Shown one piece after another: positions 50,901 to 53,900 of a DNA stretch of 64,000 bases. Where the stretch lies: the NCBI GenBank assembly GCA_002269645.1, contig NIVC01000419.1:372001-436000 (forward strand), read 5' to 3'. Position 1 is the first letter of the stretch; the number at the start of each line of letters is the position of its first letter. Both the position numbers and the translations under genes were made by a program. Source of the DNA: Macrostomum lignano. Lineage: Eukaryota. A model generated the notes under the pieces. The model saw only the letters and a program-made list of their open reading frames with translations, was not told the origin of the DNA and made no database searches.

Positions 50901-53900
50901 ATCTGTCTGTGTCATTTGATGGTTACCGCTATCTCTCTGTGTCCTTTGATGTTCACCGCTATCTGTCTGTGTCATTTGATGGTTACCGCTATCTGTCTGT
51001 GTCATTTGATGGTTACCGCTAGCTCTGGGTCCTTTAATGTTTACCGCTATCTGTGTGTTCTTTGATGATCACTGCTATCTGTGTGTTCTTTAATGTTCAT
51101 CGCTATCTGTCTGTGTCCTTTGATGTTCACCGATATCTGTCTGCGTCCTTTGATGTTCACCACTATCTGTGTCTTTTGATGTTCACCGCTATCTGCGTGT
51201 TCTTTGATGTTCACCGCTTTCTGTCTGTGTCCTTTGATGTTCACCGCTATCTCTCTGTTTCCTTTGATGTTCACCGCTATCTGTCTGTGTCATTTGATGG
51301 TTACCGCTATCTCTCTGTGTCCTTTGATGTTCACCGCTATCTGTCTGTGTCATTTGATGGTTACCGCTATCTGTCTGTGTCATTTGATGGTTACCGCTAT
51401 CTCTCTGTGTCCTTTGATGTTCACCGCTATCTGTCTGTGTCATTTGATGGTTACCGCTATCTGTCTGTGTCATTTGATGGTTACCGCTAGCTCTGGGTCC
51501 TTTAATGTTTACCGCTATCTGTGTGTTCTTTGATGATCACCGCTATCTGTGTGTTCTTTAATGTTCATCGCTATCTGTCTGTGTCCTTTGATGTTCACCG
51601 ATATCTGTCTGCGTCCTTTGATGTTCACCACTATCTGTGTCTTTTGATGTTCACCGCTATCTGTGTCCTTTGATGTTCACCGCTATCTTTCTATGTCCTT
51701 TGATGTTCACCGCTATCTGTCTGTGTCCTTTAATGTTCACCGATATCTGTCTGCGTCCTTTGATGTTCACCACTATCTGTGTCTTTTGATGTTAACCGCT
51801 ATCTGTGTCCTTTGATGTTTACCGCTATCTGTCTGTGTCCTTTAATGCTCACCGCTATCTGTCTGTGTCCTTTGATGTTCACAGCTATCTTTCCGTGTCC
51901 TTTGATGTTTACCGCTATTCTCAATTCTACAACAATATATGTATCATTCGCAAAACTTGAACACTGCAACAGGTCCAGCAGATGAAGAACAAGGACAATC
52001 GGATCAAACTACTCAACGAAATTTTCAGCGGCATCAAAGTGCTGAAGCTGTACGCCTGGGAGCTGTCGTTTCAGCGTCAGGTTGAGGACATTCGCGAGTT
52101 GGAGTTGACAACGCTGAGAAAGGCCGCCTATCTCAATGCTGTTGGCACTTTTACCTGGACCTGTGCGCCGTTCCTGGTGAGTGTCACAGTCTATCCGCTA
52201 ATTAAAGTGCATTACCTATCTTCAGACTAAATTTGTTTTGAATTCAATTGGTAGTTTACAAATATTGCTTAAATACTCGTAATTTATGCAACTTGTTATT
52301 AACTTGAAATATCTTTTACTTTGGTTTTGCTTCTGTTCTCATACGGAACAAGTTTATAGAGAACTAATTGATTGATTGATTGATTAATTAATTGATTGAT
52401 TGATTGATTGATTGATTGATTGATTGATTAATTGATTGATTGATTGATTGATTGACTGATTGATTGATTGATTGATTGATTGATTGACTGATTGATTAAT
52501 TAATTGATTGATTGATTGATTGATTGATTGACTGATTGATTGATTGATTGATTGATTGATTGATTGATTGATTGATTGATTGATTGATTGATTGATTGAT
52601 TAATTGATTGATTGATTGATTGATTTATTGATTAATTAAATAATTGATTGATTGATTGATTGATTGATTGATTGATTGATTAATTAATTGATTGATTGAT
52701 TGACTGATTGATTGATTGATTGATTGATTAATTAATTAATTAATTGATTGATTGATTGATTGACTGATTGATTGATTGATTGATTGATTGATTGATTAAT
52801 TGATTGATTGATTGATTGATTGATTGATTGATTGATTGATTGATTGATTGATTGATTGATTGATTGATTGACTGATTGATTGATTGATTGATTGATTGAT
52901 TGATTGATTGATTGATTAATTGATTGATTGATTGATTGATTGATTGATTGATTGATTAATTGATTGATTGATTGATTGATTGATTGATTGATTGATTGAT
53001 TGATTGACTGATTGATTGATTGATTGATTGATTAATCGATTGACTGACTGACTGACTGACCGATATGCCTACAGAAGTAATCGATGTCATTCAAATCGAG
53101 CATAATTGTGATTATCTTATTAAACTGCCGCCCAAGGTCACCCTGACCACATTCGCCACCTACACTCTGCTTGGCAACAATTTGACTTCGGCTAAAGCTT
53201 TCACAGCTCTTAGCCTGTTTAACATATTGAGATTTCCCATATCGATGCTGCCAATGCTGGTGTCTTATTGCGTCACAGTGAGTAGTTGCGCTATTAGTAT
53301 TGTGTTGAGATTGTATGTTTCAGTTGCCTGTATGATCACTTTTTAACAATTTTGCTAACAGTTTATCCATTTAGTCTGTTTTGCTAATTTTGATCATTTT
53401 AGAAACCTTGCTAGTGTTCTTAATTGCTTTTTAATTTCATTTATCTTTTTATAATTATTGAAAAAAACTAAATTGTTTTAACCAACAGGTCACTCTGTGC
53501 ACGTTCACGGCTTACACTCTAACCTCACCCGATCACGTGCTAACGCCAACAAAAGCATTCACAACTTTGGCTCTATTTAACTTGTTAAAAGTGCCTTTAG
53601 CATTGTTGCCTATGGTGTATTCTTACACTATCACGGTAAGGCTCTGAGTGAAGGTATATATGCATGGCGTGTTGTGACTTGTGCTCAGCATGTACTAACC
53701 TGTGAACCCGTCCAATTGCTGGTGAACCACCTCAGACACTTGTGAATCGCGTCATCAGCCACATGTGAATCACTACCTTTAACACCTGTGAATCACTACC
53801 ACAAACAAATGTAAATCACTACCTCTACCCTCTGTGAATCATTACCTCTACCCCTGTGAATCATTACATCTACCCCTGTGAATCATTACCTCAACCACAT

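Follow-up and report, generated by a model that had tools for sequence, protein, structure and literature searches.

Two consecutive, homologous exons that each fit the reading frame of one gene raise the question of whether an mRNA takes one of them, takes both, or leaves one unused. Such a pair is found in the free-living flatworm Macrostomum lignano (assembly GCA_002269645.1), in positions 372,001 to 436,000 of contig NIVC01000419.1, a stretch of 64,000 nucleotides (nt) that we call the window; positions below count from its first letter and all features lie on its plus strand. By tblastn of the M. lignano protein P0241, the window contains a complete ABCC1/MRP1-like transporter gene at 44904..63567, in which exon 9A (53137..53277; 141 nt, 47 amino acids (aa)) is followed by exon 9B (53489..53635; 147 nt, 49 aa). 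The tandem pair itself is real. We consider it probable that 9A and 9B are tandem-duplicated alternative cassettes of the transporter and that each mRNA carries exactly one of them; 9A would be the default, and 9B a less used or a condition- or tissue-specific alternative.

Exons 9A and 9B and their place in the transporter

Both exons are phase 0-0 and neither translation contains a stop codon. 9A is bounded by the acceptor ...cccaag|G and the donor ACA|gtgagt and 9B by ...caacag|G and ACG|gtaagg, with a U2-type GT-AG intron of 211 nt between them (53278..53488); the acceptor and the donor of 9B fall inside the range of those of the constitutive exons of the gene. Constant exon 8 (51973..52176) ends in ...TWTCAPFL with the donor gtgagt, and constant exon 10 (55099..55383) starts at ttttcag|GCTGCC and runs through the Walker A motif of the first nucleotide-binding domain. 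Either 9A or 9B alone links exons 8 and 10 without a shift of the reading frame, in the phase and with the length expected of mutually exclusive exons. An earlier note on this DNA had described the pair in these terms, with good splice sites, open frames and either exon completing an MRP1-like protein, and our reading of the sequence and translations agrees with it. It had also pointed out that 9B, which is unannotated, is missing from the list of open reading frames (ORFs); this is so because the first in-frame ATG, GTG or TTG leaves fewer than 40 codons.

The two exons are 53% identical in amino acids and 60% (84/141) in nucleotides. In tblastn against the 64-kb window they match each other with E values of 2.6e-11 and 5.2e-11, and the next match has E > 0.1. 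The window holds exactly two copies of this exon, homologous and adjacent as mutually exclusive exons are, and exon 9 is the sole duplicated exon of the gene.

In the exons checked, the product of the window gene is identical to P0241 (PAA83455.1, 1557 aa), and its best protein matches are M. lignano proteins of 99-100% identity (P0121/PAA57130.1, P0241/PAA83455.1 and P0242/PAA70647.1), which their source names 'ABC-type glutathione-S-conjugate transporter'. In the precomputed Pfam assignments these products have TMD0_ABC (PF24357), two ABC_membrane domains (PF00664) and two ABC_tran domains (PF00005); TMD0 followed by two units of ABC_membrane plus ABC_tran is the architecture of long ABCC transporters, as expected of an ABCC1/MRP1-type protein. 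The best solved-structure match of the exon 8-10 region is human/bovine MRP1 (E 1.5e-67). We assign the window gene as an ABCC1/MRP1 orthologue because it encodes the long-ABCC domain architecture and its nearest solved structures are those of human and bovine MRP1. The assembly also contains two further copies of the gene (L001 and L002) and a 74%-identical paralog (locus L003, from NIVC01001551.1; positions 5428-5778 of L003).

Alignment to human MRP1 (8vt4) places exon 9 at residues 560-608, where it covers the outer end of transmembrane helix (TM) 10, a short turn outside the cell and the stretch of TM11 that spans the membrane. Constant exon 8 encodes most of TM10, the residues equivalent to T550 and W553 among them. 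The description of 9A and 9B as TM10-TM11 exons is therefore right for TM11, the turn and the outer end of TM10, but not for the whole pair of helices. At human positions 593, 594, 597 and 598, 9A has R, F, S and M and 9B has K, V, A and L; M601 and N590 are retained in both. R593, F594, N597, I598 and M601 are substrate contacts in MRP1 according to cryo-EM and mutagenesis, and mutation of F594 nearly abolishes the export of glutathione and vincristine (PMC12647609). The alignment at 593, 594, 597 and 598 bears out the expectation that the variants differ at substrate-site residues. Because they differ at the contacts R593, F594, N597 and I598, it is reasonable to suppose that the choice between 9A and 9B retunes the substrate pocket: 9B would replace these four TM11 contact positions (R593K, F594V, S/A at N597 and M/L at I598) and leave the rest of the pump the same.

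Constraint on exon 9B and its possible use

The intact frame of 9B would matter little if the exon were a silent relic, never in mRNA or there only as noise, and functionless. In keeping with such a relic, 9B is the fastest-evolving branch of a tree of exon segments, and both R593 and F594 are replaced in it. An unused exon so old, however, should have lost its frame, splice sites and conserved residues. The comparison of 9A with 9B gives pS 0.69, dS about 1.9 (near saturation), dN 0.38 and dN/dS 0.20, and because the synonymous sites are near-saturated and dN/dS is nevertheless 0.20, the duplication appears to be old and both copies appear to have been constrained since. In a family alignment of 32 orthologous exon segments, 18 columns are near-invariant (at least 90% conserved), of which 9B retains 15, and the differences between 9A and 9B avoid these columns, with 2 of the 21 falling on them (hypergeometric P = 2.6e-4). 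In addition, R593K and the replacement of F594 (by V, M or L) occur in the alternative variant of insects too.

The further gene copies also bear on the question of a relic. Over the 731 nt compared across the window, L001 and L002, both additional copies retain the two exons, all splice sites, including both of those of 9B, and the 211-nt spacing. 9B differs among the copies at three sites (53572, 53575 and 53603) and 9A at one, and all four differences are synonymous; the flanking introns have 7 differences in about 320 sites. As a sign of constraint the synonymous-only differences are suggestive only. Taken with the comparisons above, we read 9B as an intact exon held by purifying selection, as a maintained mutually exclusive exon is expected to be, and a silent relic as unlikely.

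Several observations nevertheless weigh against the reading of 9A and 9B as alternative cassettes. Among the eight M. lignano entries that span exon 9, P0121, P0122, P0123, P0241 and P0242 have 9A and the paralog has its single copy, so that every annotated product of the gene has 9A, and no 9B-containing transcript or protein was found in a protein collection of 15 billion sequences; both points are also in favour of a relic. A query made of exon 8, 9B and exon 10 found no match above 53% identity in the same collection, in a search that returned only proteins of up to about 1.75 times the query length (371 aa for the 212-aa query). The synonymous-only pattern of 9B consists of just three substitutions, with P about 0.02 under neutrality. 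For the choice between the exons, the unique parts of the introns were scanned for inverted repeats and for duplex energies against dinucleotide shuffles, and no inter-intron duplex went beyond the shuffles (z from -1.3 to +1.6), matches of 10-13 nt being expected by chance, and the gene copies are about 98-99% identical, which leaves no covariation power for pairing candidates. The absence of 9B proteins is weak evidence because the collection has no RNA-derived fragments of this gene, those of 9A included. That 9B is spliced into mRNA, and that 9A and 9B exclude each other, is what we infer from the sequence.

The two exons could also stand together in the normal mRNA, or 9B could be an optional cassette after 9A, in either case yielding a protein with a duplicated segment. 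9A and 9B both have lengths divisible by three, an intron of 211 nt suffices for splicing, the splice sites of 9B are as good as constitutive ones, and nothing in the sequence forbids co-inclusion. The annotated products at the three gene copies, on the other hand, splice 9A straight to exon 10, and the annotated isoforms of the nemertean Tubulanus polymorphus have one variant of this exon or the other, never both. The topology of the protein argues in the same direction: because exon 9 leads from the outside of the membrane to its inner (cytoplasmic) side, the second copy of a doubled exon 9 would start on the wrong side, be wrongly oriented and break the 6+6 helix core. Judging from the solved MRP1 structures, co-inclusion should not yield a working pump. 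We consider joint inclusion very unlikely; 9A and 9B are most likely used one at a time.

Introns, repeats and the proposed choice between the exons

If one exon is taken per mRNA, the other has to be kept out. Steric hindrance was ruled out as the means, as the intron between 9A and 9B is 211 nt long and the distance from the 9A donor to its likely branch points, which lie up to 55 nt from the acceptor, exceeds 150 nt. Nonsense-mediated decay was ruled out by the lengths of 141 and 147 nt, both multiples of three. On these two mechanisms the earlier note was correct. Incompatibility of U2- and U12-type splice sites was also ruled out, as the four sites are ordinary GT-AG sites with the donors GTGAGT and GTAAGG and have no ATATCCTT/GTATCCTT motif.

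Of the three acceptors of 9A, 9B and exon 10, that of exon 10 has the best pyrimidine tract. The 9A donor would normally pair with this strong acceptor, with which the alternative exons would compete, and RNA pairing or trans-acting factors may switch the choice. With bidirectional pairings such as those of insect MRP1 and Drosophila srp, an upstream pairing would loop out 9A and a downstream pairing would loop out 9B. For insect MRP1, competing or bidirectional RNA pairings have been reported (PMC6071210, citing Yue et al. 2017); in M. lignano such pairings are not demonstrable.

The flanking introns contain candidate arms in this topology, both of low confidence. The upstream arm, CAGACTAAAT at 52223..52232, is a perfect 10-nt complement of 53369-53378, which lies in the intron that separates the two exons; with this pairing 9A would be looped out, and 9 of the 10 base pairs are retained in the other gene copies. 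The downstream arm, at 53299..53311, spans 13 nt and shows 85% complementarity to 55073-55085, shortly before exon 10 begins; here it is 9B that the pairing would loop out. The earlier note had asked for docking and selector pairings in these introns: arms of the right topology are present, but their energies lie within the range of the dinucleotide shuffles. In the bidirectional pairing of Drosophila srp exons 4.1 and 4.2 (PMC4691838) the topology is interleaved, as it is in the M. lignano candidates, but the srp pairings are conserved and mutation-tested, whereas the candidates here are 10-13 nt long and at chance level. With modest confidence, we suggest that exclusion comes from regulated competition plus intronic RNA pairing.

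Introns 7-10 are each filled by a different tandem array. Intron 8 (52177..53136, 960 nt) consists mostly of an (ATTG)n microsatellite at 52367-53059 (x173), and intron 9 (53636..55098, 1463 nt) mostly of a 22-nt minisatellite at 53759-54867, of about 50 units with the consensus CCACTGTGAATCACTATCTCTA; the further arrays are at 50023-51918 (30-nt unit, x65) and 55406-55865 (22-nt unit, x21). The three gene copies differ greatly in intron size: intron 8 measures 960 nt (window), 560 nt and 620 nt, and intron 9 measures 1463 nt (window), 4167 nt (L002) and 13321 nt (L001). The intron that separates 9A from 9B has its exact 211 nt in each copy.

The unit of the intron-9 minisatellite carries CACTGTGA, a perfect 8-nt complement of the 9A donor TCACA|GTG (53266-53280), of which the window has 20 exact copies; its match to the 9B donor TCACG|GTA is poorer. 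One could imagine the minisatellite as a multivalent docking array on the 5' splice-site region of 9A, and more weakly of 9B, whose copy number, about 10-fold variable between gene copies, tunes the choice between the exons, with 9B a conditionally used cassette for substrate specificity, of independent origin in the flatworm lineage; such a means of exclusion would be new for mutually exclusive exons. We regard this proposal as highly doubtful. The complementarity of CACTGTGA to the donor is possibly due to chance, which a rough estimate puts at a few percent, and makes the repeat a multi-copy potential partner of the 9A donor.

Several other features of the locus were noted. Exon 11 ends in GAG AAG|GCGAGT (window 56155-56165) and is followed by a GC-AG intron; the GenBank models (IGEK|GINLSGG) use the GC-AG site, and the older UniProt models P0122 and P0123 mis-splice around this intron and lose 43 residues. 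A long (ACN)n run at 47090-47440, which the ORF lists show as poly-Thr or poly-Ser depending on the strand, sits in the intron after the exon that ends near 47088 and is noncoding in the annotated product. Upstream of the transporter gene, short imperfect G+C-rich tandem repeats at 38000-39850 produce long ORFs in several frames of each strand (GKCPEGKCP.., ICPPDICPP..), and the ORF at 38048-38329, which precedes these G+C-rich repeats, resembles a segment of a major-facilitator/SV2-type transporter.

The same exon in other animals and the origin of the pair

Exon 9 is found in two variants in insects as well. Gene models of Anopheles spp., Timema spp. and Gryllus wrongly concatenate two tandem 49-aa copies of the exon 9 segment, and in the genome of Anopheles gambiae these are two exons of 147 nt, both phase 0-0 and separated by 605 nt, whose boundaries are those seen in M. 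lignano. The statement in the earlier note that an insect two-variant cluster covers this segment is borne out by the models of the three genera. This cluster (Anopheles AGAP009835; 'exon 4' of Drosophila CG6214/dMRP) is, like that of M. lignano, a tandem phase 0-0 pair, and as read in Anopheles, Timema and Gryllus it has the same boundaries, starting with V after ...APFL and ending before xSVS. One insect variant is canonical (LRFP) and the other alters F594 (LRMP, IKLP), as 9B likewise does. The pairs differ in length, with 147 nt for both insect variants and 141 and 147 nt in M. lignano, and in order, the non-canonical variant standing first in insects and the canonical one first in M. lignano.

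Another spiralian with the pair is the nemertean Tubulanus polymorphus, whose RefSeq isoforms X1 and X2 (XP_074651921 and XP_074651922) differ in exon 9 only. In the Tubulanus genome a 49-aa variant is followed, about 640 nt on, by a 47-aa variant, so that the length dimorphism is common to Tubulanus and M. lignano but the order is reversed. The Tubulanus variants are 67% identical, compared with 53% in M. lignano, and both keep R593 and F594; both isoforms are annotated, unlike the 9B isoform of M. lignano.

Other MRP genes are also varied by exon choice. C. elegans mrp-1, an MRP1 orthologue, has four experimentally confirmed mutually exclusive homologous exons, 13A-13D, of 156 nt each, whose intervening introns are too long for the exclusion to be steric (PMC4165533), and these exons are reported to coincide structurally with one Drosophila mrp event (PMC9741552). 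As in M. lignano the lengths are multiples of three, with four variants rather than two. Drosophila MRP has a cluster of 8 exons and, besides it, a second event of this kind (PMC6071210, PMC9741552). In the bivalve mollusc Mya arenaria RefSeq isoforms X1-X3 (P0176/P0263/P0264), and in the chiton Liolophura sinensis isoforms X1 and X2 (P0217/P0278), are of equal length and differ only in the TM14-TM15 region, at human residues of about 1080-1135, Mya having at least three variants. Like the 8-exon cluster of Drosophila in the second transmembrane domain (TMD2), the mollusc cluster swaps a transmembrane hairpin by exon choice, as in M. lignano, but through the TM14-TM15 exon, which is single-copy in the window gene. 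The Mya and Liolophura cluster corresponds, among molluscs, to the large cluster of Drosophila.

Not every MRP gene has the pair. In the annelids Owenia and Dimorphilus the introns occupy the same positions and exon 9 is single-copy, and ten further mollusc and insect isoform sets have no annotated isoform swap at this exon. In the M. lignano paralog, which has lost intron 8, exon 9 is present once, as a 49-aa segment fused to exon 8, and no remnant of a second one was found even at E = 50. The search for the duplicate among orthologues of other animals, which the earlier note had proposed, accordingly came out negative for these annelids, and for the molluscs at exon 9. To take M. lignano for a first non-arthropod case would be an overstatement, as C. 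elegans mrp-1 13A-13D, Tubulanus X1 and X2 and, as cited, Yue et al. 2017 precede it. PMC6071210 and PMC7434440 credit Yue et al. 2017 with multiple and independent duplications of MRP exons across phyla, and MRP/ABCC1 exon clusters in annelids and molluscs are likewise known by citation. A literature search found no paper that links Macrostomum with mutually exclusive exons.

Is the pair of M. lignano then the same, by descent, as the pairs of insects and the nemertean? 9A and 9B could go back to a pair of alternative exons in ancient bilaterians or protostomes, which would make them orthologous to the pairs of insects and the nemertean, with repeated losses elsewhere. Exon 9 and its boundaries are the same in the flatworm, the nemertean and the insects; HVLTP.KAF and PL.LLP are common to 9B and the first Anopheles variant; F594 is replaced in 9B and in all alternative insect variants; and the identity of 9A with 9B (53-55%) is below that of either with the paralog (65-68% for 9A, 61% for 9B). 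In a neighbour-joining tree of the 32 exon segments, however, 9A, 9B and the paralog cluster together, as do the two Tubulanus variants and, separately, the first variants of insects. The AF[T] column has T in 9A, 9B and the paralog but V in at least 90% of the remaining sequences, and the 47-aa and 49-aa variants stand in the opposite order in Tubulanus. The single-copy exon of Owenia, Dimorphilus and the paralog, and the ten isoform sets with no swap at exon 9, also speak against an ancient pair, and published work argues for independent MRP exon duplications, according to PMC6071210 and PMC7434440 and their citation of Yue et al. 2017.

Every relevant bootstrap in the tree, over 49 residues, is below 50% either way, so that the tree of the exons with the insect variants, another check that had been proposed, gives a topology toward lineage-specific duplications with bootstraps below 50%. 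The evidence leans toward an independent origin and is not decisive; independent duplication of exon 9 in separate lineages is weakly favoured because of the clusters in the tree, the common AF[T] residue and the reversed order of the variants. An ancient pair seems quite improbable. The exon-9 segment of the paralog is about equally similar to 9A (65-68%) and to 9B (61%), and, as far as its sequence goes, the paralog neither dates nor polarises the duplication of 9A and 9B. If the exon pair predates the gene duplication, cDNA-mediated intron loss could have removed the second variant of the paralog too.

Exon choice in MRP genes is already known from insects, a nemertean and other phyla; what the M. 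lignano pair adds is a further example, not a new phenomenon. 9B is a coding exon left unannotated in the current M. lignano gene models. If it is used, the main M. lignano pump for the efflux of glutathione conjugates and xenobiotics exists in two versions, which would differ at TM11 residues known from solved structures and mutagenesis to determine substrate handling, and the flatworm would join the animals that diversify MRP1 by exon choice. M. lignano is capable of transgenesis, and therefore the isoforms and the intronic elements are directly testable in it. Together with the nemertean and insect cases, the M. lignano pair marks exon 9 as a recurrent target of duplication, and this exon is a natural experiment on convergent switching of a substrate pocket and on mechanisms of exon exclusion.

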